64,000 nt of DNA from the NCBI GenBank assembly GCA_964188305.1, contig OZ076890.1; one strand, given 5' to 3'. The position numbers were made by a program, and so were the translations under genes. The notes beneath the pieces are model-generated. The model had not been told where the DNA came from. It ran no database searches and saw only the letters and a program-made list of their open reading frames with translations. Shown here in pieces: positions 639 to 61,394 of this stretch; within the stretch, counting starts at the first letter, position 1; each line of letters begins with the position of its first letter. The DNA comes from Podarcis bocagei (taxonomy: Eukaryota).

Positions 639-1354
639 CAGTGTTTCCCAAACTTTTTTGGGCAACGGCACACCTGTTTACTGAAAAAAAATCTCGCGGC
701 ACACCATCATTAAAGCCCCGCCCCGTGACGTCAGCGCGCAGCGTCACGCCGGGAGGGACGCACGAAAGTGAAAGTTTTTTCCCTCCCCCTTGCCGGGGAA
801 CCTCCAAGCTTTGGGGGTGGGAGGAGGCAGCAGAGCGAGGGACTGAGGGACGGCGGCAACTGAGGCGGCGGCGGCTGTTGTGGTGGTGGCGGCGATAGCG
901 GGCGGAGGAGGGGGCGGCGGCGGGGCTTGAGGAGCCGTCGCCGGGAGTTGCTGCAGCTCCTCGAAAGGCTTCTCTCAGCTGCGCTCAATCCGCCTCGGAG
1001 AGGATTTCCCCTCCGGTCCCATGCGTTCGTTTGGGGCATCGCTCCGGCTGCTCCCTCTCCCGCCGCGCAGGAGCGATGCCTCTCTCTGGCTCTCCCTCCG
1101 CGCAGGCTGAGGGAGGGAGGGAGGTGCGCATGTGACCCGTCTCTGCTGGGAGACCAAACCCAGCGAGGCAGAGTCGCGCGGAGGCGCCCAGGCAGCGCTG
1201 CCGGCTGCGAGGAGGAGCGCCAGGCAGCAGCAGGAGGCGCGGCCTCTCCTCGCCGCCGCCCGACTCGCCCGCCTCCCTCCAGGCATCTCGCGGCACACGA
1301 GGCAACGTCTCACGGCACACTCGTGTGCCGCGGAACACCGGTTGGGAAACACTG
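639..1354. mobile_element. Non-autonomous hAT DNA transposon with GC/CpG-rich cargo (Pack-hAT-like, copy 1)
   Basis: TIR CAGTGTTTCCCAA...TTGGGAAACACTG; perfect 8-bp TSD GGCTACGT (631-638 and 1355-1362); subterminal GGCACAC repeats; arms 639-759 and 1286-1354 match those of 59952-61394; no transposase ORF. Confidence 0.92.
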
Positions 1355-2746
1355 GGCTACGTTTGCAGGGGCTTTCTGCCAGAATTGCAGTTCTTAAGGC
1401 AAGTCAGACACTTGGAGAGAGAAAACTATCAGCGCCGCAGTGTGACTGCATAGAAGCCACAAAAAAGGAAAAGGGGGTTGCTTAATTATAGTGGTTGCTT
1501 TTACAATTGGTCTTCTGTGCAATCACACATCCCACCCCCAATTTTCATAGCAGGATATTGTGGACCAAAACAATAAATAAAACCCTTATGGTGGTCACGA
1601 TAGTCTACATACTGCTGGACTTGCACTTTTGGAAGAATACCCAAGGCAACTCTTGAAAAGTAGAAACCTTTCTAGAAAGGACCACCCAAAGAAACAACAG
1701 CTATACTGGTGAACAACCCTGTTCTGTTTAAGTATGCTTATACAAGCCAATCTCACTTTTGTAACTGGAGTTTAGATTTAGCAAATATTTATTTCTCTTC
1801 GCTGCCACCACCTGTAGCTACCTTTTATTCACATGACTTAAAACGCTGAAGTATCCCCTGCCTGCAGTCTGGTTTGCTGTATATCTATGGTATGTTTTAT
1901 ATGGTCAGATACTCAAATAATTCACCCAGGCCAACCCCTACTTGTTGCATAGGGGTGCTTATATCAGTGGAGCTTGTGAAGCCTGTGTTGCTAAACTTTG
2001 GCTAAGGAACAAAGAATAGTTGCTGTGATAGCATGCCAAACCATTAAATTGCAAGTGTCAACTTGCCGGCAGATATTCCGAGGTACTCTTGTTTCCGCCC
2101 TCACAACACAGTAGGGTGTGGTGTTCCAAACTAGGTCAACGAATACCTAGGAATGTGGAACTGACTGTTTAATTAGGGCTATCTTTTCATTCTTTAGTTC
2201 TTAAATGTTCTGCGGCTCAGCAGTTGTGTTACATAATGGAAGCAAATTCTAACACTGCATGATTGTACAGTTGGCATGCAGTTCTAAGTATCTCAGACAA
2301 TGAGAGGTACCAAATAAAGCACAGCTGAGACTTAACAAAACCAACCTTTGCTGGGGTTTTTTAATCAGCCTACATGGAAACATCTTTATCATGTATGAGC
2401 ACCCATAAGCCTAGAATCAGGATTTGTTTTAAAAATTGTGGTCAGGAGCTTCACTTTGGAAAAATCTCAGAATGGCAAGGAAACAATAGGTTTTTTTCCT
2501 GGTTATTAGACTTGTTTCATGACCTTCTCTCATCTTCGATGGTGTACTTTCCAGACCTGTGAATATTCACATTTCCCAATACCTAATTCCTAGATTAAGT
2601 CATCCTAAACTATTACAACTTTTGCACCATCTTCCCAGCTCTGTTTGGTCCACCTACCCCAGAGGCAACAAAGGGATGTTTTGGCCATGGGACAATCAAA
2701 TGATAGGCATTTTCTGGCCAGCAGACATTTCATCTTCATGATACAG

Positions 2747-3323
2747 TGTGATGTGCCGAACAGTGGAGTTTGGTCTTCTGACCTCTACAGACATCTCCAT
2801 CTCCTTATCCAAGTGCTTCTCTAGCAAACTTAGTTGTTGACAATATAAATGGCCCAGAGAACAGGAAAGGTAAGCAGTGGAATAGGACATGTTGATATCT
2901 GTGACTCAGGATTGGAGCTGGAGCTGTTCTCCCCACAAATGAGGCTTATCTCCTCACCGCCAACCCTTCATTCTGATCACCAGCTACATCATTGTTCACC
3001 CCTGAATATTCTCAAACTTCTTCCTTCTCTTGAGCAAACCCTTTTTCTGTGAGAGACCACTGTTGCTAAAACTTCCTAGCAGACTCTGGGCTTTCCACTG
3101 GTCTGTTGCCTTAATCTTGAAGCTGGTCGAGGGAGGGCTTGACCGTAGAGGTTATTGTAGTGATTGTGGGTGGTGAGTGGCTGGTGAGGTGCCCTTGACA
3201 GTCTTTCTGGATGTCTTAGGACTCTAGCAGGTTCTTCCAGTTGTACTGGGATTCTCTCTGGAGTCCCATGCCTCATCCTCAGAGGAGGTCTCCCAGGGTC
3301 CCTGGACAGATAGTTTCCTAACA
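2747..3323 (-). mobile_element. Probable degraded solo LTR, related to 30208-30924
   Basis: Minus strand begins TGTT and ends ACA; shares a GAGACCTCCTC...GGGAC...GAAGAACC block with the element near 30.9 kb; no TSD seen; boundaries approximate. Confidence 0.35.
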
Positions 3324-4689: not shown

Positions 4690-4757
4690 GACAGCTGCAT
4701 ATTCCTGAATTGCATGATCCCCAGAGTCCCTTCCAACTCTACAGTACTATGATTCTA
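4690..4757 (+). mobile_element. CR1-type LINE 3' tail
   Basis: GTCCCTTCCAACTCT followed by a CTATGATT tail repeat; same end at 63300-63378. Confidence 0.6.
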
Positions 4758-4760
4758 ATA

Positions 4761-7854: not shown

Positions 7855-8320
7855 CAATAGTTTTCAGCTAGTGTGCCGTGGCACCCTGAGGTGCCTTGAA
7901 TGGTGGCCGTGGGCAACACTGGCTTCTGTGTTTCCTTCACTCCTCTTGTGTTTCTGCCTCCCAAAGGCTTGTGCAGCTGTTTGTTGCAGCAGCTCTGGCT
8001 ACAGGCTCCCCAGACGAATGGTACCTCTGGGGCTGACCAGGAGGTGCTTCCCAGGCCCCTTTGGGGCAATGTGAGGAGGCACTTCTCAGCTCAGAGACTG
8101 GGGTGGCAGCAGTGGCTGCCCGGAGGACTCCCAGGGAGATGGGAGAGCAGAGGAGGTTGAGGGAACATTTCACAAGGGAGAAAGTTTGAAAAGCAGTGAG
8201 GGACTGCCAGCTCTGTAGGCAAGGAGTGAAATAACTGGACTCCTGAGGCCCACAGGGGTGCCGCAGAAAGAATGTAGTTGGTCAAGGGAGCCGGGGGCCC
8301 AAAAAAGTTGAAAACCTCTG
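7855..8320. mobile_element. Older non-autonomous hAT element
   Basis: Imperfect TIR CAATAGTTTTCAGC / GTTGAAAACCTCTG; TSD GCTTAAAG / ACTTAAAG (7 of 8 match); subterminal GTGCCG motifs. Confidence 0.75.
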
Positions 8321-8353
8321 ACTTAAAGTATTCTAAACTCAGTAAACTCAGTA

Positions 8354-8578
8354 CAGTGGTACCCCGGGTTACATACGCTTCAGGTTACAGACTCCACTAA
8401 CCCAGAAATAATACTCAGGTTAAGAACTTTGCTTCAGGATGAGAACAGAAATTGTGATCCGTTGGTGCGGCGGCAGCAGGAGGCCCCATTAGCTAAAGTA
8501 GTGCTTCAGGTTAAGAACAGTTTCAGGTTAAGAACAAACCTCCAGAACGAATTAAGTTCTTAACCCAAGGTAGCACTG
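8354..8578 (+). mobile_element. Tigger/pogo-like MITE, family A copy 1
   Basis: TA|CAGTGGTACC...GTAGCACTG|TA; internal CAGGTTA repeats; close match to copies at 24959, 39778, 43094 and 62408. Confidence 0.9.
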
Positions 8579-10689
8579 TACTTCTGATGAACACGAGGAT
8601 GTGAGGCTCAATAGACTCAACTTGCCCCAACTGAGCTTTTCACTTGCTTTTCTGGGGCTGTTTCCAACTTTTGCAACTGCAGAAGAAGTGAGTTGTAGGT
8701 AGCACAGTGCTTGAAGAGAGGGGATGTCAGTAAAATGCCTAGGAAAGTCCCTGTTTCCTGTGCTATGCTATCCTTTCCCTGCCACCAACACAATGATCTG
8801 GTTTAAATGCCATGGTAAACCATCATTTTAGTATGAAGCTGCAGTGAGTCTCAGGTTCTCCCACCCACCCTTTCTTCATCAAATTGTGGGGAGGAGTTTG
8901 GAAGATTTTGTTTACAGCTTAGGTTACTGCTGTTTGTTATATTGTCTGAATCTGACAAACGAAGTTTGAAATAAACCATCATGGATTACGAGGCAGATTT
9001 ATTTAACCACACCATAGATAACAAACCACAGTTTAGGGTTCTGACGAGATGCTAGACTGTGATTAATGGAAATTGGATATGAAAGCGTTCAATGACCACA
9101 GAAAAAGAGAGGGGAGAAGATTGTGTGGCTTGCTATTAATACACTATGATGCGCAGCATTGTGTTTGAATGGGGCCAATGAGTCACCTTTGCCCATCTTC
9201 AGAGCCCCTGCCATGAAGTATTGATGGAAGCAGTGGGAGCATTACAGACCACGAGTGGGATTGAGAAGCTAGGGCTTATGATTCAGCTCAACACTAGCTT
9301 GTCATAGATGAATTGGCAGGAGCACTCCCCCCGCCCCCCGGTATAAATAGTAGCCATTGTCATCAGAATGAAAGGAAAGCAGCTGTTCAGAGCAAACGTG
9401 GAGAGTAGTTGAAGGATGACATAGCAGGACTACTGAACTGTTGTCCTCTCCAAAATAAAATTGAATCCATGCAGCCACATGGTTCAGCCTCTGCACATGA
9501 ATACTTGATTCATACAGCTCTTTTGTGTTTGGAAAGCACTTGCAGGACAGTGGAATGCACCATGCACCATAGATGTTATTAACTCCAGCAATTCATGCAA
9601 CATGGATGTTATTAATTCCAGCCAATTTTTACCAGGGCACAAACCATCATTTAACTTTTGTATCCTATAATCAAGTTTTCAGTTGTTGAGCATACAGATT
9701 TAATGCAACCAGAATCTGCTTCCCATCCTTGCTAAGTTCAGTATTATGTATTTGCAGCTAGAACTGAGAAATGGTATGCAGTGCTGGAAGCCAAAGTAAA
9801 ATGATTTGCCCAAGCTCTGTATTTGCAGCCAGTGAGTTGGTTTTCACAAAACATTAAACCATAATTTAAAATAAGCTATGGTTTAACGCACACGGGTGCT
9901 TGGCTCTTTCACCATTGGACCCGCTATTGGTCTCATCTGCCCAATCCACCAGAGCCTATCTTCACATGCAGGGAAGGTCCCTACTTCACTGAGGGTTTGA
10001 GACCCATCGGCTACCCTGACCTGGTTTAGCTGGCCAGTTGAAGCTGTTTCCTTTGGTATGGCCACTGTCTCATGCTGACAGTGTCTAGGAGCCACAAGTG
10101 AGAGCTGAGTGCAGGGTGGGAACCAAAGGTGGACAAACTACCCCATAAGGAGTATATAAGTCATATCTGTGCTCAAGGCTTCTTTCAGTTTCTACACTTA
10201 AAAAGGGCACTACTGCTTTGCCCAGGTGTAACTCCAAACCATGGTGCCATGAAAGCACACTGTGGCTTTTTATTCTTCCAACTCCCCTCCCTCCCTTCTT
10301 GCACAGTGATGAGAAACTAGGGGAGACTAAGATTCCACAAACTGAGACCAGAAGATTCCTACCTCTCTGTGCAAGAGGGAAGAAGGGGTATATGACTGCG
10401 TCAGGACTCATACCTGCTCATTCTCATAAAGGTAAGCCATGGTTTGTCATTACATCTGAACACAGCCAACATGATCTGTGCAACTTTCCACCTTGGCAGA
10501 AATAATGGGGAGCAATGTGAAACTCAGAACAACCTCTATGCAAAGAGTAATCTGAGCAGCCTTTTTTGATTGACGGTATCCTTGGATAATATGGTTTTGC
10601 TTCTCTTCATTCAGTTTTTAGAGTATTTTGAGTAGTTCTAATCTTGAGTAGTAGTAATAAATCTGCTTTTGTTTTTATGTTTTGAACAG

Positions 10690-10768: not shown

Positions 10769-11165
10769 GTAAGTGAATTACTGAAATTATTTTCCTATTG
10801 TATAATTGCAATGGGCATGATCAATTGAAACCAGTGGAGCTTAAAATAGCTTAACTTTTGTTGGAATATGTCCAGTGTGTATTGTACTTGAATATGTAAA
10901 GCAATTAGTCTTATTCATTGGGAATTATAGCGTGAATTCAGGTTTAATGAAATGGAACTTTGTTGCTGTTCTGTCCAATGCACTGGGCAAATGTCCATCT
11001 TCCAAGTTATAGCCTGAATAACTTAACAGTGAGTTGAATTAAATGTAATTGCAAACCATTGTTTGGTGTTATATGGAAGAGCTCCTGGACTCCCCTCACA
11101 AACTGCAAACTATGGTTTTCACAAACCCTCTAAACCAGGATGGCAAACTGCACGGTTTGACATTA

Positions 11166-12428
11166 CAGTGGTGCCTCGCAAGACGAAATTAATTCATTCC
11201 GCAAGTCTCTTCGTCTTGCGGTTTTTTCGTCTTGCGATGCACGGTTTCCCATAGGAATGCATTGAAAATCAATTAATGCGTTCCTAGGGAAACCGCTTGC
11301 CAGGCTGGCGGTGCGGAGAAGGGCTTTTCTCCGCACCGCAAGCCTTCAGGACAGGTACGAGAACAGAGGGGAAGGCGCGCAGCGCTTTCCCTCTGTTCCC
11401 GGGGCTTGCGTGGGAGGAGGGTTTTTCCTCCCCGCCGCCAACATTCAGAACAGCATTCTGAATGTTGGCGGTGGGAAGGAAAACCCTCCTCCCACCCCAA
11501 GTCTTCAGGAAAGCCATCCGATGCCGCGCGGTGGGAGGAGGCGTCCCCCCCCCCGCCCGGCATCGGAGCTTCGTTCCGATGCCGCGCGCCGGGAGGAGGC
11601 GTTCCCCCCCCGCCCGGCACCGGAGTTTCGTTCCGATGCCGCGCGCCGGGAGGAGGCGTTCCCCCCCCGCCCGGCATCGGAGCTTCGTTCCGATGCCGCG
11701 CGGGGGGGGGAGGAGGCGTTCCCCCCCCGCCCGGCATCGGAGCTTCGTTCCGATGCCGCGCGCTGGGAGGAGGCGTTCCCCCCCCGCCCGGCATCGGAGC
11801 TTCGTTCCGATGCCGTGCGGGGGGGGAGGAGGCGTTCCCCCCCCGCCCGGCATCGGAGCTTCGTTCCGATGCCGTGCGGGGGGGGAGGAGGCGTTCCCCC
11901 CCCCGCCCGGCATCGGAGCTTTGTTCCGATGCCGCGCACCGGGAGGAGGCGTTCCCCCCCCGCCCGGCATCGGAGCTTCGTTCCGATGCCGCGCGGGGGG
12001 GGGGGGAGGAGGCTTTCCCCCGCCCGGCATCGGAGCTTCGTTCCGATGCCGCGCGGGGGGGGGGAGGAGGCGTTCCCCCGCCCGGCATCGGAGCTTCGTT
12101 CCGATGCCGCGCGGGGGGGGGGGAGGAGGCGTTCTCCCCGCCCCGCCCGGCATCGGAGCTTCGTTCCGATGCTGCGCGGCGGGAGGAGGCGTCCCTCCCC
12201 GCCCGGCATCGGAGCTTCGTTCCGATGCCGCGCGGCGGGAGGAGGTCCGAGGACAGTGGGGAAGACGCGCTGCGCTTCCCCGCTGTCCCGGAGATTTCCC
12301 TATGGGCTGTCGTCTTGCGAGGCAAGCCCATAGGGAAATTCGTTTTGCGAAGCGCCTCCAAAACGGAAAACCCTTTCGTCTAGCGGGTTTTCCGTCTTGC
12401 GAGGCGTTCGTCTTGCGGGGTACCACTG
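11166..12428. mobile_element. Non-autonomous Tigger/pogo-like element with internal hairpin minisatellite
   Basis: 22-bp TIR CAGTGGTGCCTCGCAAGACGAA / TTCGTCTTGCGGGGTACCACTG (2 mismatches); TA TSD at both ends; repeated subterminal CGTCTTGCG. Confidence 0.92.
11517..12245. repeat. GC-rich tandem array, 12 units of about 56-65 bp, each with a 27-nt palindrome
   Basis: CGGCATCGGA-GCTTCGT-TCCGATGCCG starts at 11558, 11615, 11672, 11732, 11789, 11848, 11908, 11965, 12025, 12083, 12148 and 12204; linkers are G-run/GAGGAGGCGTT/C-run. Confidence 0.95.
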
Positions 12429-15400
12429 TACATGGGACCCAACGCTATTCATGAACATGTCCAATTTACGGCGTTTATGCCACTGATTGCTATACCAACT
12501 ATATTTATTGTGATCAAGATATATCCAGTGTTATTCTGCTGCACCAGTATTTACTGAACCTGAGAAAACTGCAAAAACCGCTATGATTTCATATTATTTA
12601 TGCAGTGAGTGAAGGTTGCATTTCCTATAGTGAAGCTAACTATGTTGCCTCTACTACAGAGATTAACATACAGCACAATTCCACTTTTCTATGAAATGTA
12701 TTATTGTTTATTACCCTGTTGAATTAAAACAACTGGTTGTATTCCTTGAGTAAATGTAGCATTTACTACATTTTTGTAAACAGCTTGGGCTTGGAGGATT
12801 GTTTGGGTGTTTGTTTTTATAACCAAGCTGCCTGTAAGTTTTAAGAAATAAATACATGAGCAGCTAATCCTGGAAATTTACAGTATCTGCGTTGAGGCCT
12901 ACTCTCATGCAACTGTGTATAGACTTACATTCGTTTTGCTTTGTTTCACTTATTTGATTGCAATACGCATTTGCCACTTAAAACAAGCCATAATAAGATG
13001 AGAGAAATTGCAGCAGAGCAATTTTAGTTTTGTTATGTCCAAACTTTGGTTTACCGGCTTTGTTAACCAGTTTGCTGTGGTCTTTTTTGAGTGATAGTTA
13101 GTAAAACAAAACAAAGTGTGCCCTGAATTCTTGGAGCCACCAGTTAAGTGGTTGTCCTCACAGATAATAATTGGCACTAAGCTGATTAACTAGCAGAATT
13201 GTAACTAATGAACAGATGAAAGTTTGCAGCCATGGTTAAATATCTCTCTTCTTTCTTATTAGATTTACTGTATATCTTGCTGAGTGGGGGTAGGGAGGAA
13301 TTCTAGTCCATGTGCTTGGCCTAGCCTAGGTGTTTAAATATATAGACACTGCTGCTTTACAAGGTTGTAAATACGATAATTGATCATGACCGCTGCTGAA
13401 GCATTTAGAAGTAGACGCCTTTCAAAGAAGAATCTGTTGTTTTACAAGCTCGTTTAGAGGTTGAATGTTTTAAGTGATTCCTGGGGACTAGCAGGTTGCT
13501 TTTTATGATGATTCTGTGCCTGTGATAAATAGAATAGGTTTATATTTCTCCGGATTTCGCTTGGCTCCAATCAGAAGCTGTCGACATAATGCTAATTCTC
13601 CTTTTTGCACACAGTGAGTCTTTGTAGTGGAGAGCAGGTGCTGTTTTCTCACCAACCAAAGTAAATTAAAAGAGAGACTGTAGTTAATGAGTTGCTAAAC
13701 TGGTATTCCTTGACTGATAGTTTTGGGGGGGGGGTGAGGGTAGGAAGGGAGGAGGAACTTGCGGTATAAATAGTGGGCATCCTTTTCAGGTGACTTGAAA
13801 ATAAGTTTATTACTGATGGGGCCTGGCCTGACATGTGTGCGCATTTGCTGTTCTCATTTTTGCTGATCCTTTTGAGGAAAACCAGCTCCTGCAGTAATGG
13901 GGGAAACAGAAGCAATTAGTGGTGTGCTCTCAAAGGCGGAATCTGAGGCCCTGCTTTAATTGCAGTGTTTAAATCATCTAAATTGGAAAGTGTTGCTACT
14001 GCCGACGCCCCCCCTCCAGCTCCCCAAAAGAGCTTTCTTCCATAATTGGATGCAAAAGTATTTTGTTGTTGTTGTTTGCTGATAGCTTCTTGGTTTCAGG
14101 CACATAATTAGTAATGCGTATGCATTGGAGTCACTAAAGCTGAAAATCCTAATAATTGGAGGGGGGAAGCGTATGGACGTGCAGGTAGGAAACAGAGAGC
14201 TGGAGGAGTGAAATAGTGTTCTGTTGATAGTACCTAAGTAGAGCTGTGTGCGTCAATAAAACAAGTGTCCTACTGTGCTGGAATACAAATGGGCTGTCTG
14301 TAGCAGGGTACAGCAAAGACATTTGGCAAAGAGGGATAGGAGAGCTTCTGGCGTAATGTAATTGAATTGACCATTTCTCTAAAGATACAGCAAATTGTTT
14401 GTTACAGCATTCATCATCATAAGGGAGGCCAGACAGCTTGCCAAACATATTATATTTCTAATAAAAATGGGAGAAAATAAAAGCCTACAGCTCTTGCGCT
14501 AACATGCAAATTACTCTTACTATGTTTGTGGCGTTTAATTGATACTATTTTTATTACTAATACTGTTGGACATTGACCTTGCAAGAGCTGTATAGTTTTT
14601 CATTTTGAGGAAGAGAGGCTGTGTTGACCCATAAGGAAAATGCCAAAATCCTTGATTGGCTGAACTGAGCGTTTAAATATTAGCCAACATTATGGCTTGC
14701 GCGAGAGTTCGTAAAATACCTTGCATATTTTTTGCCAGCCACAGTGCTTCTGTGTTATTCTATTTCCTTGGAGAAACTGATATGTTCATGTAACACGAAG
14801 CTGTGATGGAGCACAACCCAGAAGTTTCTGAGGTTGGTTATGTGATGTAGAAGACCAATAAACATGGGCCTAAATGACAGCTGGCTGGCTACATTCACAA
14901 TGGGTCTTTCCTCAGTGAAATTAACCTCTGCCCAGTTGCTATTTTTTGCTGTGTGTTTACTGCTCCGGAGTTTCACAAAATTGGTCCCAGCAAGAGGGCT
15001 TTTTCAAGGTTGGTTTTGTGACTTTTTAAAGTATATTGAAATAAAAGGTGTCTGATACCTTTCTTTTTTAAAAAATAAATAAATAAATGGAGGAACTTGC
15101 TTAAGTCTCTCCTAGAACACTGCTCCTTGTTTGAATTTGCTGTGGTTTGACACATGATGCAACAAGAAGCAGCATATCTGAAATGGTATAATATGAAATG
15201 CTCAGCCTCAGTACATGGGGAAAACCCTTTCAAGCCAGCTCTAGAAGACTGAACGTAAATTGTATTCTGACGGGCCCCCTGGGCCATGCAGTGATGGCTC
15301 AGCAAATGAGAAGCAGTTAGCTTTTTAGATTGCCACATATGGAGAAGACAGGCATTTTGATTTCTTGCACCACTGAGCCCCTGATAAGGCTGGAAATTGG

Positions 15401-24908: not shown

Positions 24909-24958
24909 CTGCCCTCTGATTGCTGCAGGCTTGGAACAGAGCAGTGGCTTATAAAGTA

Positions 24959-25145
24959 CAGTGGTACCTCGGGTTAAGAACTTAATTCGTTCCGGAGGTC
25001 CGTTCTTAACCTGAAACTGTACTTAACCTGAAGCACCGCTGCACGATTTCTGTTCTCATCCTGAAGCAAAGTTCATAGCCCGAGATACTATTTCTGGGTT
25101 AGCAGAGTCTGTAACCTGAAGCGTCTGTAACCTGAGGTACAACTG
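24959..25145 (-). mobile_element. Tigger/pogo-like MITE, family A copy 2 (internally deleted)
   Basis: TA|CAGTGGTACCTC...GAGGTACAACTG|TA; reverse orientation relative to 8354. Confidence 0.9.
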
Positions 25146-35731: not shown

Positions 35732-36096
35732 AGGATGCGGGTGGTGCTGTGGGTTAAACCACAGAGCCTAGGACTTGCCAATCAGAAGGCTGGCGGTTCG
35801 AATCCCCACGATGGGGTGAGCTCCCGTTGCTCGGTCCCCGCTCCTGCCAACCTAGCAGTTCGAAAGCACATCAAAATAGGTACAAAGCAAGTAGATAAAT
35901 AGGTACCACTCCGGCGGGAAGGTAAACGGCGTTTCCGTGCACTGCTCTGGTTCTCCAGAAGCGGCTTAGTCATGCTGGCCACATGACCTGGAAACTGTAT
36001 GCAGGCCTCCCTCGGCCAATAAAGCGAGATGAGCACCGCAACCCCAGAGTCGGCCACGACTGGACCTCATGGTCAGGGGTCCCTTTACCTTTACCT
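35732..36096 (+). mobile_element. Sauria SINE, full length
   Basis: GGATGCGGGTGGTGCTGTGGGTTAAACC head, GGTTCGAATCC B-box, (ACCTTT)n tail; TSD TACTTAATAG(C/A)AT. Confidence 0.93.
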
Positions 36097-37615: not shown

Positions 37616-38014
37616 TTGTTGTTTTTTAATAAAATTTTTATTGGTTTTACAAAGTTTTTATAGACAAAAAACAAATAAACAAAGACACTTACAAACATGT
37701 ATAATTTCATATCCTTTTTTTCTTAAACCTTACTTCGTCGACTTCCCCATACCTCCCCTTTCTACATCCCAATTTCCAAAGTTATTTCAGCAAATCCTAA
37801 CACTTAATTTTATCAAATTTTTCCCTTATTCTTTTCTTTTACTTAATGTTTTTCAGCTGTAAGCCCCTTTTCCCCCCTCAAATCTCGACATTTTAGCACT
37901 CATTAATTTTACAATATTTCTTAAGATAAACTTTAAATTTCTTCCAATCTTCTTCCTCCGTCTCTTTCCCCTGATCTGGTTTCTCTTCAGATCGTATAAA
38001 TCTTTCGCCTTTTA
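37616..38014 (-). mobile_element. 5'-truncated L1 (ORF2 C-terminus plus 3' UTR)
   Basis: Minus-strand ...EEEDWKKFKVYLKKYCKINEC* resembles an L1 ORF2 end; polyA signal (TTTATT on +); TSD AAAAAAACAACATTATG on both sides. Confidence 0.78.
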
Positions 38015-38380
38015 CAAAAAAACAACATTATGCCCCACATAAATAAAGTACAAACAGTACTTCCAATGTTTTTGATGCTCATTTTGAAAGCATTCATGAT
38101 GCTCAGCTCACTTTTATCCAACAGAGGTAGCATATTTTAGCACTCATTAATTTTACAATATTTCTTAAGATAAACTTTAAATTTCTTCCAATCTTCTTCC
38201 TCCGTCTCTTTCCCCTGATCTGGTTTCTCTTCAGATCGTATAAATCTTTCGCCTTTTACAAAAAAAAACAACATTATGCCCCACATAAATAAAGTACAAA
38301 CAGTACTTCCAATGTTTTTGATGCTCATTTTGAAAGCATTCATGATGCTCACTTTTATCCAACAGAGGTAGCATATTTTA
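37890..38380. repeat. Tandem duplication, about 244 bp x2
   Basis: 37890-38133 repeated at 38134-38380; ATTTTA microhomology at the junctions. Confidence 0.95.
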
Positions 38381-39777
38381 TAAATGGAATGTCATTCATT
38401 TGTTGGCAAAAGTCTACAGTATTGGCAAATAGGGGATTGCGAACATTTGGGCAGATATGGGGGTTGCCAGCATGGTGTTGGTGGAATTATTATTTTGATT
38501 TATTAAATCAAATCATTTGCCAGTTGTTTGAAAACAGTGTGCAATGCTAAGATCCAGATCATAAGCTGAACTGAGATGATGTGAGATATATAAACGCTAG
38601 TGGGACCTGCAACAGAATGTTGCCATGTGGATTTCTTGTGTTCAGGGTTCCTTCCAGCTGCACCACACTAGCTGTTTAGCTGTATGTGGTGCCTGTTGCC
38701 CCGATACTACCCTTCTGTGAAAAACCAATTACAGTATGGTTATGTTTAAATTCTGTGAATGAAACTATGCTAAAAGGAATCCGTTTGCTTAATCCACTAT
38801 GAAGTTTTGCTGAGAAATCCGAACCCCTTGTGAATCAAACCTGGTATGTCAGCTGCTATGTGATGATATGAAAATATCATTTCTTCAGTTCTTTACAAAA
38901 TTTAGCGTTTTTCAAAATTTAGCATACAGACTCAGCAGTTGTTAAAACCATTTTTAAAACATTTATTGCACTGCAGTATTGGTTGGAAAAATAAAATGGG
39001 GCGGTGGGGAAAACTAAATCAGAATTTGGTTAGCAGCTTACTATTTACATTTCCCTTTCTTTGCATTCTGAACTTGAAGATCAACTCACCTCTTAACAGG
39101 TAGGGGCTTTCACCATGTGAAATTTTTAGAATGCGTTTGCTTCACCACATTTTTTGAAGTCAACATGGTCTTTCCCTGTTCATGACGACGATGGCGCAGT
39201 GCCCTGTGGGGCCGCTTAGATACTACATGCTCTCCCCATGTGTTGTGGCACCTGCTCCCACATTGTTTGGTCCATGTTGCATTGGTAGCATCTGCAGAGA
39301 AGGAATCACATGGGTCAGGCAGACGACAGGATTCCTTCCCATGGCATTACTGAGCTAGCAACACCATTTGCAGATATTACCAATGCCAGCTGGGAGCAGA
39401 GCACTGCAAAAGTAACATGCGAGTCAGGTCTTATAACTGGCACACTTTTGGAATACTTGTTTTTCATAGTGGCTCACCACATGATAAAAGCAGCTGCAAC
39501 TTCTTTGCCAAATGTCATGTTATTAATATGGCTTGTTACAGGTTGATAGACCCCCATGCGGATGTTGCTATTCCTAGGTTCTGTTTTACAATTAGTTTGT
39601 CAGGGCGAAAAGTTTGCTAATTTATTCTGTATTGAATTCGCTTGCTGGTGGAGGTTTTAATAAACCACACCCATACTTTTGAGCTTGTGCCATTTTTATA
39701 AGCTAAGACAGAAAGGTCAAAATATATAATGGGGCTTTGGACTGCGGTCACTTAATCTGTGTACAGGAATCAACATA

Positions 39778-40019
39778 CAGTGGTACCTCTGGTTACGTAC
39801 TTAATTCGTTCTGGAGGTCCGTTCTTAACCTGAAACAGTTCTTAACCTGAAGCACCACTTTAGCCAATGGGGCTTCCCGCTGCTGCCGCACTGCTGGAGC
39901 ACGATTTCTGTTCTCATCCTGAAGCAAAGTTCTTAACCCGCGGTACTATTTCTGGGCTAGCGAAGTCTGTAACCTGAAGCATCTGTAACCTGAAGCGTAT
40001 GTAACCCGGGGTACCACTG
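39778..40019 (-). mobile_element. Tigger/pogo-like MITE, family A copy 3
   Basis: TA|CAGTGGTACC...GGTACCACTG|TA. Confidence 0.92.
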
Positions 40020-41689
40020 TATACACTTTTCAGAAGAGAGTGCCCCCAGCCTTCTGGAAAACAGGACACCCAGCACCACACAAATCCATAACCTGGAGGC
40101 CTAATTTCCATTGTAATTTTTGGGCAAGTAAGAAACAGCAGAGTCCTTTCTGAACATTGGGCGAGACTCCTTCAGTTTCTGACCTTTTCCATACCTTGCA
40201 GAAATAACAGATGATTCACCCTTACAGAGGATAATGGGGGAAGGGAACTGTGGCCACGCCACACAACAATTGGCTGACTGGCAAGCTGAGCTAACATTTG
40301 TGTACCCCTGTCTGTGAAGAAAATGACTTTCTGTAAGCACACACACACATTATGGATAAGTGGTCCCCCACCCCCCATGAATACATTTATCTAACCTATC
40401 ATGCCCTATTGCACTTTCTTGTTTGGGATAAAGTTCTCTTTCCCCACGTTTTTCTATTCCTACCTCCAAAGACGAAGGCACCCAGCCAGCACGTGACATG
40501 AGTTATATGAAAATTCTTTCTAACCTGTTGGAAAAAGGAATTGAGCCATATCCATGGAACCCATCTGTGTCATTATTTTTAACTATGCTATATTGAACAT
40601 GAATTGAACTCAAGGTTAAACCACAAAGGAAATACTCTTTCAGTCTCTGTTTCTATTAATACAGCGTGGTACACCTATGTAGGTCTTATTTTGCTGCCAC
40701 TCTGGTTTATATTCCATAGGAAACATACTGCCTGCGGTTCAGGTTCAGTTCTGGTCGTTGTCTTAAATCTGTTTGAAACCAGTTTTCTGGTCCATCTGCT
40801 CTTTGAATTAACTTGGGGCTGTTCATGTGAGGCATTTTCCCATCATGCCACCCGTCCTAACAGTTCCTAGGTATGGCTTCAGAAAAGGAAGAGTGCTGCT
40901 TGGACTGAAGCACATGGATATATCAGTAGCTATTTCCATTATTGAGTGAATTCACATGTTGATGGATCACTCCATACTGTTCTCCACATGATCATGTGCA
41001 ATAAATGGAATAAGCGGCTAAGAGAAAAACCCTGTATGGACTGGCCATAACATCATCATGGTTTATGTGTGCCTGAAATTAGAATCTCCTAGAGACCAGG
41101 CCAACCAGAAGTTCTCCTTTAATTCAGGTGATATTTTTCGTTGATGTACAATCGGAAAAGCTACCGTAACAGCACTGAAACTGAGCAATAGCAATTCTTT
41201 TCATTGGGCTTGTGGCTAGAACAAAGCTAGCGATAAGTAATAAAGCTTTTAGTGTAAAATGCATTCCATTTTCTTTCTGCAACTCACCGCTATCAAGGCC
41301 AAATATACGCTGTTGTCTGATAATAGGTGTTACATAACTCCACCTCCCCGCCTGCCACTTGATTCCTTTGTAGAGTTTGCCACAGACCTAGCAGACATAT
41401 CCATGGTGAACAATACATCATTATGTTAACAGTTACATGCTGCCAAGTGCAAGATGGCTTTCTGACCTACATGTAATGGTTCCAGCAAAAGAAGTATACT
41501 CACTATGCCTAGTGGTCAATTTTTCTGCACATAAAAAGTCCTGCATCCACATGGTCTTGTTGTCAACCATGGTATTAAACACACAGGATTTATTTTCTGC
41601 ACTATACTCATAAAATGGATCTGTTTTGTGTAAATCATTAGTTATGGTTAGCTTCAAAAAGTGGTTATACTTCAAAAAGTGAAAATCCT

Positions 41690-41896: not shown

Positions 41897-43093
41897 CATT
41901 AGTATATATTAAGCAAGAAATTGTTTTCTGGTTTAAATATCCAGAATAGTTCTGTTCCTGACAAGCTATGCTGTCAATGAAAAAAGGTAGGGGTGTGACT
42001 GAGCGTGTATATTCCTTTTCCTTTCTGTTTACCTGCTCTCAATGATGCAGTTGTTTTTAAAAATAATAATAATGGCAAGCTGGCATTTTGACTACAGCAG
42101 TATTAATGGAATAGGGTCCCTGTTACCAATGATTCAGTCATCTGTCAGCCTGATAAATGGATTAGTGTAAGAGGTATTCCAGCGGGGAAATGTAGCCCAT
42201 AGGGCTTCCAGCTAATTATATTTAAGTTGTTTAGTACTGCTGGGAAACAGCATCCAGGCAATTGCTGAAAGCTTTGATGCAACGTGCCCCATTAGAGTTT
42301 GTGTTCAGAAACTCATTATCCTTTCAGGCTTGTGCTGGATGGATTCTAGGAAGCTGACATTAAATGGAGAGCAACAATAAATAGCCAAGAAGACATTTTA
42401 ATTCAGCTTCTGATCCATTTTCCTGATTCAGCAACTATTGGCGTGTATGATTTGTATGCCATGCCTGCATTCGAGGGACAACTATGCTTTTACTTGGTGT
42501 GGTATCTTTACAGATCTTTTTACGCTATCATGCATCCAGATAATAATGTGATTTGATCTTTCCAAATCAGAATTTAGATCAGGAGAGTGCTATGCATTCC
42601 GGGGATCCCAGGTGGCACCAAGAGCACAAAGTGCCTTTCTTAAGGTATCTGTGTCTGATCGCTTGATTGCAATTGTCTCCTAAGTGCCTGACCTTGCAGC
42701 CATTATCTGAGCCTTATGACTTCAGAGTTTCACTAACTCTGGTGTGCTCCTTGTGGGGCTGCCCTTTAAAACCACTCAGAAGTTAACAGCTGTTTCTAGA
42801 TGCAGCTGTCAGTGGTAGCCGCAGAGAGCATATTACACTAGATATCAGATGTCAGTGTTTGCTTTCGGATGCAATTCACTTTATTTACCCCTATCCTCAT
42901 TGTGTGGGCATTGCATCTTGCTGGCTCTCTAACTCTCCGAAAGCCATGCCAGTTTAATCTTATGGGTATGTTTCCTCGCCCCATCCCCCAATGGCTTGCT
43001 TAATCTTGCCTATCCTGGTATGGATACAAGTTATTTTTAATGCGTTCTCGAAACGTGATGGACTGATAGGTGTTTCTAAAAAGATGCTATATA

Positions 43094-43335
43094 CAGTGGT
43101 ACCTCAGGTTACATACACTTCAGGTTACATACGCTTCAGGTTACAGACTCCGCTAACCCAGAAATAGTGCTTCAGGTTAAGAACTTTGCTTCAGGATGAG
43201 AACAGAAATCGTGCTCCTGTGGCGCGGCGGCAGCAGGAGGCCCCATTAGCTAAAGTGGTGCTTCAGGTTAATAACAGATTCAGGTTAAGAACGGATCTCC
43301 AGAATGAATTAAGTACTTAACCCGAGTTACCACTG
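43094..43335 (+). mobile_element. Tigger/pogo-like MITE, family A copy 4
   Basis: TA|CAGTGGTACCTC...GAGTTACCACTG|TA. Confidence 0.92.
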
Positions 43336-43747
43336 TATTGGGCATATGCCAGGCACTCATGACAGTAAGAGGGTCGATAACGGAAAAAACATACCACATA
43401 GTAGGTGTTCCTATTACATTTGACTTATTTCCACACAATGTGGTTGTGAACTTGCTGTTGCCTCAGTTCTCCAGTCAACCTAGTGATTTATCCTTCCCAA
43501 GAACAGGCCATGGGCAGATAGTCAGTCAGAGGAAAGGTCATCTATGAGAAATTGTTTTTCTTGCATTCCATAGGGACATAAGAAGCTGTCTTACACCAGA
43601 TCACTATTATCTATATGACGGGCAGTTTTTCTCCAGGGCTTCAGACAAGGGACATCCCTAGCCTTAGCTGGACATGCCAGGGATCAAACCAGGGGCCATT
43701 GCATGCAAAACAAATGTTCTACCATTTGTGGCCCTTCCTAACTTCTT

Positions 43748-43847: not shown

Positions 43848-43983
43848 CAGGCATGGGCAAACTCAGCCCTCCAGATGTTTTGGGACTACAACTCCCATCA
43901 TCCCTGACCACTGGTCCTGTTAGCTAGGGATGATGGGAATTGTAGTCCCAAAACATCTGAAGGGCAATGTTTGCCTATGCCTG
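43848..43983. mobile_element. Palindromic 136-bp hAT MITE
   Basis: CAGGCATGGGCAAAC / GTTTGCCTATGCCTG; nearly the whole element is an inverted repeat; TSD GTCTCCAT / GTCTACAT. Confidence 0.88.
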
Positions 43984-44329
43984 GTCTACATTACTAATTC
44001 TTTACTTCCTTTATGAGAAAGTCAGCTTTCTATGTACCATTTATTATGGCTTCCCTGCTTTCCTAGCTTTCCTGTTGTGGCTACTTCTGCTAGTGGGGTA
44101 CCATATTTTGGGGGATTCACTACAGCTAAGCTATGTGCTGTTCCCATAAGAACTTCTGCAATGCCCCTGATGCTCTAGAACTCATACTCTCAATCTCTCA
44201 AGACACACTATAACCCCCTCCCCTCAAATATCCTGCGTTGGTAGTGTATCTGAAACTGGAGCAAAACCTTCCCATTATTTGTACTGATTTGCTTTTGGGT
44301 TGTTTGATTGACATATAGGATGACACACT

Positions 44330-45799: not shown

Positions 45800-46760
45800 T
45801 AGCATAATGTTATTATACAAATCTTGGTGAAGACTGTGTACCATTCTGGTCTCCACACCTCAAAATGTTTGTTGTAGAACTCTGAAATGGTCTGTAAAGG
45901 TCCATCAAAATTATTGAGGGGCTGGAGCTTCTCTGCGAGGAAAGGTTTGGGGGCGCTTTTATTTAGTTTAGAAAAATGGTGAGCAAGGCAGGACTTGATA
46001 GATAAATATAGGAATCTGCATGGTGGCGGGGAAAGTGGATAGAGAGAAACTTTTCTCCTTCTCTAGAACTTGGGGCTTTCAAGTGATGTTTAATGTTGTA
46101 AGCTTCAGGGAAGGCAAAAGAACAGATTTCACACAACGCATAGTTCAACTGTGGAATGTGGTGCCACAATATGTATTGATGCCCACCAACTAAGATGACT
46201 GTAAAAGAGGGTTGGATAGATTAATGGAGGATAAAAAAGTAAAGGTAAAAGACCCCGGACAGTTAAGTCCAGTCAAAGGCAACTGGGGTTGCGGCGCTCA
46301 TCTTGCTTCAGGCCGAGGGAGCCGGCGTTTGTCCACAGACAGCTTTTCAGGTTGTGTGGCTAGCATGACTAAACTTCTTCTGGCACAACGGAACACTGTA
46401 ACGGAGACCAGAGTGCACGGAAATGCCGTTTATCTTCTGGCCGCAGCGGTACCTATTTATCTACTTGCACTGGTGTGCTTTCAAACTGCTAGGTTGGCAG
46501 GAACTGGAACAGAGCAATGGGAGCTCACCTCGTTGTGGGGATTCATAGCTCCGACCTTCTGATTGGCAAACCCAAGAGGCTCGTGGTTTAGACCACAGAG
46601 CCACCTGCATCCCTTTAATGGAGGATGCTAACCATGATGACTACATTTAGTCTAAATATAGTTGGAGAGCACAGCTCTGAATACCAGCTGCTGGAAAGCA
46701 CAGGAGGAGAGTGTGCTGATGCGCTCAGGTCTTTCCTGTAGGCTTCCCACAGGGACCTGT
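45800..46760 (+). mobile_element. Degraded CR1 LINE 3' part, interrupted by a Sauria SINE
   Basis: TGTGTACCATTCTGGTCTCCACACCTCAAA (C-V-x-F-W-S-P-H-L-K motif) and TTCACACAACGCATAG...TGTGGAA; boundaries approximate. Confidence 0.65.
46233..46614 (-). mobile_element. Sauria SINE, full length
   Basis: Reverse-complement match to 35732-36096; 12-bp TSD TTAATGGAGGAT (46221-46232 and 46615-46626). Confidence 0.92.
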
Positions 46761-48144: not shown

Positions 48145-48147
<3 letters not shown>

Positions 48148-48191: not shown

Positions 48192-48193
<2 letters not shown>

Positions 48194-49554
48194 CTCCCAC
48201 TAAACTGAAAATGTCCCAGTTAGCATTAAATCACCTGTGCTGGTGGTTACTGTTCTGAGGGCCCTTCCCTTCCAGGGATGGGCAGTCTGCAGAAAATGCT
48301 CTCTATCCGCCCATCTGATTGCTACCTTATTCCCTAATAACTACTTCTGTGTGCCATGATTCAGCTCCTAGGTTTGTATGATCACAAGACATCTTCATGA
48401 TTTGTTGTATTATCTAGTACTGTACATTTGAAGTCTTTCCAGAATGGTAATTATGGTGTTTTTTCCAGTTGGCAATGGAAGGAAATATAAAAGGTTAATG
48501 ATGTTCTACTTATGTAGAAGGAGTTGTTGCTTTGTTGTTCCCTCCGAGAATGCTCACACTTATGGGACCAAAATGGACAAAAAGGGAGCTCTCAGCAGAT
48601 GGCTGGGAAACACTGAGGTTTGCAGAAGTGTGGAAAGTCTTCGGGGGGGGGGTAAACCAAAAACACTCTAATGATTTCCGCACGTGCTCAGCTGTGCACA
48701 AAACACTGACTTGCTGTTAAAAGAGGAGAAATGGAAAGTCAAGGGGAAGCGGGAAAGGAATATTTAAAAAGGAAGGTGTAGATATAAAAGGGGTAGAAAG
48801 AAATAGCCAATTGCTATAGGTAATTTCCTGGTTCTCTGGCTTTTTGCTTCTTTTTCAACTTCCTCAGCCTCACACATGCGTACCAGGGATACTCTACCAC
48901 ATTTTACTGTAATAATGCACATGCATAGTCTAATGTGGAATGATTATTTATTTATTTTTAAAGCAATTTAAATAAAATAATAAGCTGTTGTGAGCTTTTT
49001 TCAGACAATTAAACATGCAGCCACACAATACCTGGCAGATAACCCAGCTGCATCCAACAATTATATTTATTTCTATTTTTGTTGTTTTTAATAACTTTTA
49101 AAAAAAGATAAAATGCTCTAAAAATAAAAAAGTAATAGAGACTGACTTATTCATAGCATTTACTCTGAGATGTGAACTTATTTTTTATGCCTCAGTGCAC
49201 ACTTGGAACTGAGCCCCTTTAAATTCAGTGGGACTCAACTTTCCTGCAGACAGGCATAGGATTGTACTGCAAGGTTTCTGCACATGTGACTTTAAGACAC
49301 TTTCAGCAAACCCTTACATTAAAATAAAAACATTTCATAATGGTGGCATTGAAACTATTATTCAGTGATCAGTTTAATTTCATAAAATATGACAATAGTT
49401 TGAAGAAGTTGGTTGGTTGCAAGCATCCTTTTTAGCTTCTTTTTATTGGTCCATTTTTGTTGCTATTCTAGTCTAAATTTTAAGATTAGTGTGGGAAAAC
49501 CGATGGAGAGTTATGACTACATTCGTAGCCCACCTTTCTTCCATCATGGAACTC

Positions 49555-50860: not shown

Positions 50861-50861
50861 T

Positions 50862-56137: not shown

Positions 56138-56273
56138 TAGGCACAGGCAAACTCAGCCCTCCAGATGTTTTGGCACTACAATTCCCATCATCCCTGACTA
56201 CTGGTCCTGTTAGCTAGGGATGATGGGAGTTGTAATCCCAAAACATCTGGAGGGCCGAGTTTGCCTATGCCTG
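56138..56273. mobile_element. Palindromic 136-bp hAT MITE
   Basis: Close match to 43848-43983; TSD not preserved. Confidence 0.85.
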
Positions 56274-56329
56274 CTTTAAGTCACTGGTTTCAGTGGATCT
56301 ACGTTGAGAATGACCAGTTCAAACATTAG

Positions 56330-57078: not shown

Positions 57079-57118
<40 letters not shown>

Positions 57119-57400
57119 GCCCAAAAGCTTCAGTTGGTCCAAAATATGGTGACCAGATGTTTGTCTATAGTTGTTGCAGGTCAGAGCTTATTACTTGGGT
57201 CTTTTTTCGGCTCTGCTGGCTTTGATGTGTTGCTTCTAGCCTATAAAGCCCCAAATAGCTTAGGGCCGGGTCATCTTAGGGACCGCTTGCTCCCATATAA
57301 GCCTGCCCAGGAATTGAGATCCTGGTCACCTTGCTGTTGGTGCCATTGTGGAATATCTGACAGGGTCTCTACAGCGGTAGTGTGGCAACTGTGAAATACT
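56330..57400 (+). mobile_element. Degraded L2 LINE (RT region to 3' end) with a younger L2 3' end nested at about 56877-57118
   Basis: SQGSALFPMLFNIYMKPIG...CQQHVGDTQLYL is a decayed PQGS...YADDTQLY RT motif; nested piece ends in an (AAT)n/(TAT)n tail. Confidence 0.8.
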
Positions 57401-59378: not shown

Positions 59379-59868
59379 GGGACTCGGGTGGCACTGTGGT
59401 CTAAACCAGTGTTCCCCAACCTTGGGCCTCCAGCTGTTTTCGGACTACAATTCCCATCATCCTTGACCACTGGTCTTGCTAGCGAGGGATGATGGGAGTT
59501 GTAGTCCAAAAACAGCTGGAGGCCCAAGGTTGGGGAACACTGGTCTAAACCACTGAGCCTTTGGCTTGCCAATCAAAAGGTCGGCAGTTCGAATCCCTGC
59601 AACGGGGTGAGCTCCTGTTGCTCGGTCCCACCTCCTGTTAACCTAGCAGTTCAAAAGCACGCCTGGCGAGAAGGTAAACGGCGTTTCCGTGCGCTGCTCT
59701 GGTGTCGGTGTTCTGTTGCACTAGAAGCAACTTAGTCATGCTGGCCACATGACCCGGAAAAACTGTCTGTGGACAAACGCCGGCTCCCTCGGCCTGTAAA
59801 GCGAGATGAGCGTAGCAACCCCAGAGTTGTTCGCGACTGGACTTAACTGTCAGGGGTCCCTTTACCCT
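59379..59868 (+). mobile_element. Sauria SINE interrupted by a hAT MITE
   Basis: 14-bp TSD TATGGGTGTTAAGC (59365-59378 and 59869-59882); head GGGACTCGGGTGGCACTGTGG; tail GTCCCTTTACCCT. Confidence 0.92.
59407..59542. mobile_element. Palindromic 136-bp hAT MITE
   Basis: Long perfect TIR CAGTGTTCCCCAACCTTGGGCCTCCAGCTGTTTT; perfect 8-bp TSD GTCTAAAC. Confidence 0.95.
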
Positions 59869-59951
59869 TATGGGTGTTAAGCATGCTACTCACTTGCCAT
59901 AAGTTTGCGCTCCACATTCCTGTTGCTTCAGTATATGGAGGTTTCTTAACA

Positions 59952-61394
59952 CAGTGTTTCCCAACCTTTTTTGGGCAAAGGCACACTTGTTTCATGAAAA
60001 AAATCTCGAGGCACACCACCATTACAGCCCCGTGACGTCAGCGCGCAGCGTCACGCTGGGAGGGACATGAATTGCTAGCAAATTACATAATCACCTCCTT
60101 GAGGGCTGGCTCATCTTCTCCGAAGGCAGAACCCCATTAATTAACAGCACAGACTCACACCATAGCCAAGATGAGGGGGGAAAACCTCAGTCATGCACAG
60201 TCATGCACATGTGGGGGCTAAATGAGGACGAAGACCGGGCAGAGAGCAGGGTTCAAATCACCCCACCTGGCCAGGACAATCCCTGGGTGCTCCCTTGGGC
60301 CACTCGCCTGACCCACCTCGCAGGGCTGTTGTTGCGAGGATAACACGGGGAGAACCACGCGCGCCCCCGGGAGCTCCTTGGAGGAGAAAGCGGGCGATGA
60401 ATGCAATGCACGAAATATATGAGAGGCGACCAGGTTTTGCAGGTGAGGGGCCCCCGCCAGCCTCCGCTTCCAACACCCGGCGCAACGACGCCGAAGTTTC
60501 CCCCCGGGCTCGGCTCGGGGAGCAGCGCTGCTCCCCCCCGGCTCCCCTTCGCCCTCCCGGCTCTCTCTGCCGCCCACTGGGGACCCCCCTCACCTGCCAA
60601 GTCCGGAGCGCCGGTGGAAGTTGCATGCATGCATGCATGCAGGGCGCCGCGTTGCCATTGCATTGCACTGCACTCCATGCAACACCTGCACGCATGCATT
60701 GCCTTGCACACCCGCCAAGGGGTCTCCCCGCGGTCCGATGCGTCCCCTCCGGCGCGGATGCAGCATTGCAAAAATAAACCCCCCCCGACGCAGCCCTACC
60801 TGGGGGGCAGCCTCCGCCTCCGCCGCTCCGCCTCCGCGGGGATCCCCGGGCTCCATCCTGCCGCCCGATCTCCGCGGGGGCGCAGGCAGGCTGCGCGGGG
60901 TCTGCGCGGAAGAGCCCCTGCCCGCCCGGCCGCCGCCGCTGCGATCATTCCATGGCCGGGAGAAGAGCGCTTCAAACAAAACGCCCGGCCCGCCAGGCCA
61001 CGCTGGGAAACGTAGTTAGCGCACCCCGCGCGGGCGCGGAGCCCAAGGGCGAGGGGACTACGGATCCCGGCAGCCCCCGCGCCGGGGACGGAGGGGGAGA
61101 GGCCGGGTGCAGGGATGAGGGGACGGGTGGGCGAGCGAGTGAGTGAGTGGCAGCCGCCAAGCCTTGGCCGACAGCCAGGAAGGGCCTCCCCGGAGGAGGA
61201 GGAGGAGGAGGAGGGAGGCGCAGAGCGGGAGGGAGGGAGGGAGGGAACCCCAGGGGTCATCTAGTGACGGCGCCCCAATCGAAAATTTGACTTAAAAAAA
61301 AAAATCTTTCGAATTTTTTAATTTTTCCCGCGGCACACCAGGCAACATCTCGCGGCACACTAGTGTGCCCCGGAACAGTGGTTGGGAAACACTG
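59952..61394. mobile_element. Non-autonomous hAT DNA transposon with CpG-island cargo (Pack-hAT-like, copy 2)
   Basis: TIR CAGTGTTTCCCAA...TTGGGAAACACTG; perfect 8-bp TSD TCTTAACA (59944-59951 and 61395-61402); arms 59952-60066 and 61326-61394 match copy 1. Confidence 0.92.
60800..60856 (-). pseudogene. Putative captured first coding exon (MEPGDPRGGGAAEAEAAPQ) inside the hAT element
   Basis: Minus strand GGCAGG-ATG-G (A at -3, G at +4), 19 codons, then CAG|GTAGGG donor, embedded in CpG-island sequence; source gene not recognised. Confidence 0.55.

Follow-up and report, generated by a model that had tools for sequence, protein, structure and literature searches.

One hAT shell around two unrelated CpG-rich interiors in a 64-kb stretch of the Podarcis bocagei genome

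Two hAT elements with common ends

We analysed a stretch of 64,000 nucleotides from the lizard Podarcis bocagei (contig OZ076890.1, assembly GCA_964188305.1; hereafter the window), in which two elements, E1 (639-1354, 716 bp) and E2 (59952-61394, 1443 bp), share their ends and differ in their interiors. Both start with CAGTGTTTCCCAA and finish with its reverse complement, forming terminal inverted repeats (TIRs) of 13 bp that are complementary at 13/13 positions, and each is flanked by its own perfect 8-bp target site duplication (TSD) (Table 1). The exact 13-mer occurs four times in the 64-kb window, always at an end of E1 or E2; with up to two mismatches it is found 10 times, compared with 2.8 expected by chance. 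A candidate third copy at 48603-48615 was rejected, as the match is limited to a TIR-like 13-mer. An earlier reading of this DNA, made from the letters alone (the sequence-only reading), had proposed a Pack-hAT-like system here; we re-read both intervals and found its coordinates, TIRs and TSDs right to the base.

Elements of the hAT superfamily have 8-bp TSDs and short TIRs with a YARNG terminal motif (PMC3014272). Because E1 and E2 combine a TSD of this length, perfect at 8/8 positions in each, with a CAGTG terminus, we place them in this superfamily. Mutator-type ends as in Pack-MULEs, with long TIRs and a 9-11-bp TSD, are not found, the TIR measuring 13 bp and the TSD 8 bp. E1 and E2 are non-autonomous hAT elements of one family that inserted independently.

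The homology between the two elements continues from the TIRs into both arms. The left arms (121 and 115 bp) are identical in 106/121 alignment columns and the right arms in 61/69, giving about 88% identity, and the homology ends sharply at the same points of the shell in both elements. The alignment thus bears out the common TIR, the left arm of ~120 bp and the 69-bp right arm given in the sequence-only reading. The octamer CGGCACAC occurs five times in the arms of E1 and twice in those of E2, together seven of its eight occurrences in the window (0.6 expected). Such a layout is usual for the subterminal transposase-binding repeats of hAT elements, and by analogy the octamer is probably bound by the transposase. 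The palindrome TGACGTCA has two sites in the whole window, both inside the arms. It belongs to the inner 40-bp block of the left arm, which is CpG-dense and promoter-like and is identical between E1 and E2 at 39/40 positions, compared with 54/68 for 652-719 (P=0.018).

In Anolis carolinensis, Novick et al. 2011 (PMC3014272) described the hAT families hobo-N1 to N15, orphan hAT-N families, hAT-HT3_AC and hAT-N3_AC. Compared by TIRs alone, E1 and E2 are one base off hAT-HT3_AC (CAGTGRTTCCCAAA, 13/14 matching) and hAT-N3_AC (CAGTGGTTCCCAACCT, 15/16), both of them Charlie-like. Judging from the 8-bp TSDs, the CAGTG terminus, the subterminal repeats and these nearby TIRs, a Charlie-like hAT family would be the best explanation of E1 and E2.

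Other pieces of hAT-like DNA lie in the window. Adjoining E2 on the left is a copy (59541-59870) of a repeat resembling a short interspersed nuclear element (SINE), of which there are two further copies (35750-36093 and 46412-46576), the three being 79-89% identical. At its 5' end it hosts a palindromic hAT-type miniature inverted-repeat transposable element (MITE) of 136 bp (59407-59542; region 59399-59550), which lies inside the SINE and has the TSD GTCTAAAC. The core of this MITE, CCTCCAG.TGTTTT..GGACTACAA.TCCCATCATCC, is common to the MITEs at 43848-43995 and 56139-56285. Its terminal ~17 nt (CAGTGTTCCCCAACCTT) resemble the end of E2, while the other two begin with CAGGCATGGGCAAAC; as its ends differ from those of its two relatives, one core has been combined with two different hAT termini. 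At 7870-7921, GTGTGCCGTGGCACC ... GTGGGCAACACTG may be the decayed right end of a related hAT, with no matching left end or TSD found.

Table 1. Coordinates of the parts of E1 and E2 in the window (CpG o/e, ratio of observed to expected CpG)
Feature	Position	Strand	Remarks
E1 TSD, left copy	631-638		GGCTACGT; identical to 1355-1362
E1 left arm (121 bp)	639-759	+	TIR 639-651; CGGCACAC at 666 and 697; CpG-rich 40-bp block with TGACGTCA palindrome 720-759
E1 interior (cargo), 526 bp	760-1285		GC 0.70, CpG o/e 0.81; microsatellites short
E1 right arm (69 bp)	1286-1354	+	Three CGGCACAC (two direct, one inverted); TIR 1342-1354
E1 TSD, right copy	1355-1362		GGCTACGT; 8/8 perfect
E2 TSD, left copy	59944-59951		TCTTAACA; identical to 61395-61402
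E2 left arm (115 bp)	59952-60066	+	TIR 59952-59964; block bearing TGACGTCA 60027-60066
E2 interior, first part	60067-60430		Not island-like: GC 0.555, CpG o/e 0.54
E2 CpG island	60431-61260		GC 0.72, CpG o/e 0.77
Divergent ACTAC-N3-TCCC-RGC motif pair	61002-61071	61002-61016 minus, 61057-61071 plus	At the GC-skew switch
E2 AT-rich inner segment	61261-61325		From 61312 probably shell of E2's sublineage
E2 right arm	61326-61394	+	Two CGGCACAC; TIR 61382-61394
E2 TSD, right copy	61395-61402		TCTTAACA; 8/8 perfect

Two unrelated interiors

The DNA between the arms is different in the two elements. No match was found between the interiors of E1 and E2, or between either interior and the rest of the window (blastn, word size 9, E<0.01). 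Both are rich in GC and CpG (GC 0.70 and CpG o/e 0.81 in E1; 0.65 and 0.77 in E2) against a background of 0.416 and 0.35. Thus, the description of the interiors as unrelated and CpG-rich in CpG-poor surroundings also holds. A Pack-TIR is defined by termini of one TIR family around 100-5000 bp of DNA that has a unique parental copy, not itself a transposable element (TE), at ≥90% identity (PMC8277862). At 526 bp (E1) and 1259 bp (E2) between the homologous arms, both interiors lie within this size range.

A Pfam scan of 16 open reading frames (ORFs) from both interiors returned no domain, transposase or other, and Rfam and tRNA scans of both gave no match. Growth of the interiors from tandem repeats was rejected, since TRF shows merely short microsatellites, a minor part of the sequence. 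Insertion of another repeat of the window into the shell was likewise rejected for want of homology within the window, and blastn found no template or copy of either cargo in the 60 kb beside the elements.

Base composition in the E1 interior turns from G-rich to C-rich without a clear pattern. Two of its ORFs, 927-1394(+) and 978-1352(-), had no true match among Logan proteins, nor did the arm-spanning ORF 629-895(+) in a full HMMER search; as the Logan set keeps complete ORFs only and the long ORFs of E1 enter the arms, these searches are uninformative for E1. Their single match (P0005) is a bacterial repeat protein and no true relative.

The E2 interior is composite, with ordinary DNA first, an island-like part limited to 60431-61260 and an AT-rich segment after it. 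Within the first part, 60240-60425 resembles a squamate SINE (its 3' part, with the A/T-rich tail); it occurs once in the window and matches no tRNA or Rfam family. GC skew in the island is negative to ~60950 and positive from ~61000. At this switch lies a divergent pair of ACTAC-N3-TCCC-RGC motifs, the sole matches to that pattern in the window (0.02 expected, for a pattern chosen after sight of the motifs), which we take to resemble ZNF143/SBS-type promoter motifs. On each side, an ATG with a donor-like GT after it can be read by eye (60856-60800, minus strand; 61115-61138, plus strand). The composition, the skew switch, the motif pair and the ATG/GT sites would all fit a bidirectional CpG-island promoter.

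E2 in a related genome

A search with the longest ORF of E2 (60401-61012, plus strand) matched four protein clusters. Each of them derives from Logan assemblies of public sequencing data and is a copy of the element. We fetched 17 contigs (L001-L017) from public short-read assemblies of 17 ERR runs. Logan assemblies are de Bruijn graphs with k=31, in which each 31-mer is unique per accession, and the places where contigs break are hence informative about repeats.

All 17 contigs contain the E2 interior at 96.5-98.6% identity to the window. They are near-identical to one another, and all differ from the window by the same ~10 fixed substitutions and several indels. Hence a single closely related taxon or population is the source of these contigs, and E2, cargo included, is older than the split of that taxon from the window lineage. 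On the left, the first base of 16/17 contigs is 60037 or 60038, so that they include 30 nt (k-1) of the left arm up to its junction with the cargo; these last 30 nt of the E2 left arm are identical to E1 730-759. On the right, ten contigs end at 61341, two at 61293 and four between 61190 and 61211, and one reads through; these classes may represent two haplotypes of the right end of the element. Contig ends at these positions imply that the 30-mer of the left arm and 61312-61341 are shared with other copies in that genome, and thus the arms of E2 are repeated there. Since the ten contigs ending 30 nt past 61312 come from independent assemblies, the right-hand part of the E2 shell probably begins at 61312 or still further inward. 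Three Logan contigs, L009 and those of P0007 and P0008, begin near 60392, perhaps because k-mers are repeated there.

The interior behaved differently from the arms. A parental copy at ≥85% identity would be expected to share at least ~8 31-mers with the E2 interior, and a TIR-free parent to appear as a contig start at 60067 or as an internal break. There was no branch inside the E2 interior in the 17 related assemblies, where it has a single context, joined to the arms. Neither these assemblies nor the protein search, which returned element copies alone, contained a TIR-free parental locus for the E2 cargo. Such a locus had been named by the sequence-only reading as support for capture; the single context attached to the arms is part of what it had listed as contrary evidence. 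An exact look-up of 20 ORFs of the window in the collection, including ORFs of both flanks that might have marked orthologous or empty sites, found none present.

This behaviour bears on whether the interiors are foreign at all. They could be native parts of longer hATs, for example with E1 having kept a right-hand and E2 a left-hand internal part, or the ordinary centres of two catalogued hAT-N families. Complementary deletions of this kind are compatible with the pairwise comparison, and the inner block of the shell is itself CpG-rich and promoter-like. In Anolis, hAT families routinely have the same ends with a different centre, and eight orphan families share TIRs alone with autonomous elements (PMC3014272). 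However, none of the 16 interior ORFs has a Pfam domain, and the E2 interior behaves in the 17 assemblies as single-copy DNA rather than as a multi-copy family. The composition of E2, its GC-skew switch and its motif pair fit a host promoter, and the presumed SINE fragment also speaks against a native centre. We consider a native origin of the interiors unlikely.

The composite might also have been built in another species and transferred horizontally, hence the lack of a parental locus here. In Anolis, the nearest TIRs are those of the hAT-HT3 group, a set of horizontally transferred families, and no parental copy was detected for E2. Scans for exact arm patterns in metagenome contigs (two scans) and in prokaryote-genome and viral contigs were empty, though, and the SINE-like fragment, if truly squamate, points to a squamate source. 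We consider horizontal transfer highly improbable.

A candidate second site for E2

Only one contig, L010 (ERR14032420, 1406 bp), continues past 61341. Its right arm is a variant with a 9-nt deletion and several bases in common with E1, and runs to ...GGTTGGGAAACACTG. Beyond the TIR it has 69 nt of flank, which begin with ATCTATCC, contain ATCTATCCTAAACTTGCC, and show no relation to the flank of E2 or to anything else in the window. In its interior, every fixed difference seen in the other Logan contigs is present. At face value this is a second site, since transposition of the composite predicts the same cargo beside a different flank, and we think it likely that L010 represents a real second genomic site of shell and cargo.

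This result bears on how the cargos entered the shell. The sequence-only reading had argued that each element, having its own TSD, inserted together with its interior. For E2, such joint travel is supported by L010, but a TSD alone is no proof, as most animal Pack-TIRs form by transposition-independent filling after the TE has inserted (PMC8277862). Here, a bare MITE of ~190 bp would have inserted and gained its TSDs, and a later internal break would have been repaired with foreign DNA, so that the cargos never moved. Single-copy Pack-TIRs mostly arise in this way, with a bare TE at the orthologous site in 94% of primate cases (Tan et al. 2021, PMC8277862). Both of our cargos interrupt the shell at an identical point, as expected of a fragile centre, and each occurs once in the window. 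Filling in place, however, needs a template that is younger than the insertion and still similar, and there is none within 60 kb of either element, whereas in 57% of such cases the parent lies within 15 kb (PMC8277862). The lack of a second context for the E2 interior in the related assemblies argues against recent filling if the insertion is fairly recent, and in L010 this cargo is followed by another flank. We therefore regard filling in place as quite unlikely.

Age of the two sublineages

Outside the TIRs, the arms of E1 and E2 differ by 14%, while the TIRs agree at 26/26 positions (P=0.02). Had both elements been resident since their arms diverged, TIRs and TSDs would be found intact in both with a probability of ~0.002. 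From the identity of the TIRs and the intact TSDs despite 14% arm divergence, we conclude that E1 and E2 belong to two sublineages which separated long ago and kept their mobility up to these insertions. The split that E2 predates corresponds to ~0.8% divergence, compared with 12-14% between the arms of E1 and E2. The family had been described as young; this is true in that the elements were still being mobilised, as their intact TIRs and TSDs show, but not of the sublineages, which have long been separate, nor of E2, which is older than the ~0.8% split.

These ages also bear on the full model of the sequence-only reading. In it, a lizard hAT family that is active and present in many copies would take up host promoters and first exons, repeatedly and by preference, and spread them through the genome, as Pack-MULEs do in plants. 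The interior is CpG-island-like in both of the copies seen, and at least three different arm/interior junctions are implied in the related genome, namely an E1-like and an E2 junction on the left and that of a right copy sharing the 30-mer 61312-61341. The MITE at 59407-59542, with almost the same terminal 17 nt and another core, could be counted as a third member. Against this, the cargo of E2 is at most low-copy, the 12-14% divergence of the arms leaves no room for a young burst, and multicopy Pack-TIRs are rare in animals (4/370; PMC8277862). The model as a whole thus seems improbable.

Origin and mobility of the interiors

Taken together, we favour, as a rather likely though far from certain reading, a mobile shell common to both elements, filled in each lineage with different promoter-like DNA that probably came from the host; at least the E2 type would have been mobilised as a unit, remaining at low copy number. 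From composition and motifs, we infer that the cargo originated in host promoters. A transposition-competent shell of ~190 bp would be kept, consisting of the TIR CAGTGTTTCCCAA, the CGGCACAC repeats and the CpG-rich block with TGACGTCA, and each shell would hold its own filler DNA resembling a host CpG-island promoter. Most likely, an ancestral copy would have acquired the filler through template switching while a double-strand break or gap in it was under repair. Each of the composites would then have moved by cut-and-paste, presumably with a hAT transposase acting in trans, and the composites would have stayed at low copy number.

Several observations weigh against this reading. No parental locus was found for either cargo, and no copy of E1 outside the window. 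Were the Logan runs RNA-seq rather than genomic DNA, the lack of a parental copy would mean nothing. The right ~250 nt of L010 are 3-8% diverged from the other contigs, compared with 0.3% in its left 1.1 kb; such a step implies either an exchange of arms between members of the family or a chimera formed where the de Bruijn path crosses the repeated arm. A single flank of the L010 site is visible, without a TSD pair, and the individual differs from that of the window. Finally, of the ~10 substitutions fixed between window and Logan contigs, four are CpG-to-TpG/CpA changes in the window lineage, and the E2 island may therefore be methylated and decaying rather than functioning. An E2-type shell plus cargo at a second genomic site is thus indicated, not proven.

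A bolder version would see in this lizard Charlie-like hAT lineage a vehicle for whole CpG-island promoters, with sublineages carrying different, possibly bidirectional, cargos to new sites. A carried promoter might then stay unmethylated and seed new transcription start sites, and the system would be an animal counterpart of the bias of Pack-MULEs towards GC-rich 5' ends, arising perhaps from a preference of hATs for open promoters. We consider this version quite unlikely. If it were true, ready-made regulatory DNA could be scattered through a vertebrate genome by mobile composites that carry whole CpG-island promoters.

Other repeats in the window

An element of Tc1/mariner type at 11165-12434 has TIRs between TA duplications (TA, CAGTGGTGCCTCGCAAGACGAA ... 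TTCGTCTTGCGGGGTACCACTG, TA). Its interior (~11270-12300) consists of tandem units of 57-60 bp that are rich in CpG, so that here a CpG-rich interior has arisen between TIRs by minisatellite growth. Shorter relatives of this TIR family are found at ~4759, 8335-8587, 17161, 24945-25149, 39764-40034, 43090-43344 and 62406-62658. Given this CpG-rich interior and the MITE core with two kinds of ends, modular exchange of ends and centres seems common in this genome.

We also noticed a tandem duplication of ~245 bp at 37890-38351 that is 100% identical (37890-38022 with 38134-38266, and 38016-38105 with 38262-38351), and is either very recent or an artefact of the assembly.

Comparison with known systems

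Plant Pack-MULEs show a biased carriage of GC-rich 5' fragments of genes in a TIR shell. E1 and E2 resemble them in having a GC-rich, 5'-like fragment inside such a shell, but Pack-MULEs belong to the Mutator superfamily and have 9-11-bp TSDs, long TIRs and documented parents. The Ds1/Ds2-type elements of the maize Ac/Ds system have only their TIRs and subterminal repeats in common with their autonomous partner, and their interiors are unrelated. They are hAT elements with the same layout of like ends and unrelated interiors as E1 and E2; unlike these, they are found in a plant, have AT-rich interiors and have a known autonomous partner. Such elements are attributed to abortive gap repair with filler DNA (PMC3260210). 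No Pack-MULE is known in animal reference genomes (PMC8277862).

Closer at hand are the hATs of Anolis (PMC3014272), which are likewise lizard elements with 8-bp TSDs and YARNG termini, and whose families have common ends around centres that differ through the incorporation of genomic DNA and TE fragments. They differ from our elements in that no CpG-island centre was reported among them, and that they have tens to thousands of copies, in contrast to the single- or low-copy appearance of the E2 cargo.

The Pack-hATs of animals are the nearest parallel in structure. Of the 370 animal Pack-TIRs in the survey of Tan et al. 2021 (PMC8277862), 208 were hAT, the commonest class, and four were multicopy. 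In the frog Pack-hAT-N8_XT, a 291-bp fragment of the CAPSL 5' untranslated region occurs at three sites (PMC8277862). As in these, E1 and E2 have a hAT shell with TIRs and TSDs around 100-5000 bp of non-TE-like DNA that resembles a gene 5' region, and E2 possibly occurs at more than one site, implying transposition of the composite. The class is defined by its parental copy, however, and none was found for E1 or E2, with indirect evidence against one for E2; formal membership among the Pack-TIRs would need such a copy. Two different cargos on one very short shell are a further difference.

The idea is thus not new, as both lizard hATs with common ends and foreign centres (PMC3014272) and animal Pack-hATs (PMC8277862) have already been described. 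Beside these systems, the E1/E2 locus is no discovery by itself, and is best seen as a clean, well-delimited case of modular hAT evolution with probable mobilisation of a promoter-like fragment, and as a useful seed for a genome-wide census.

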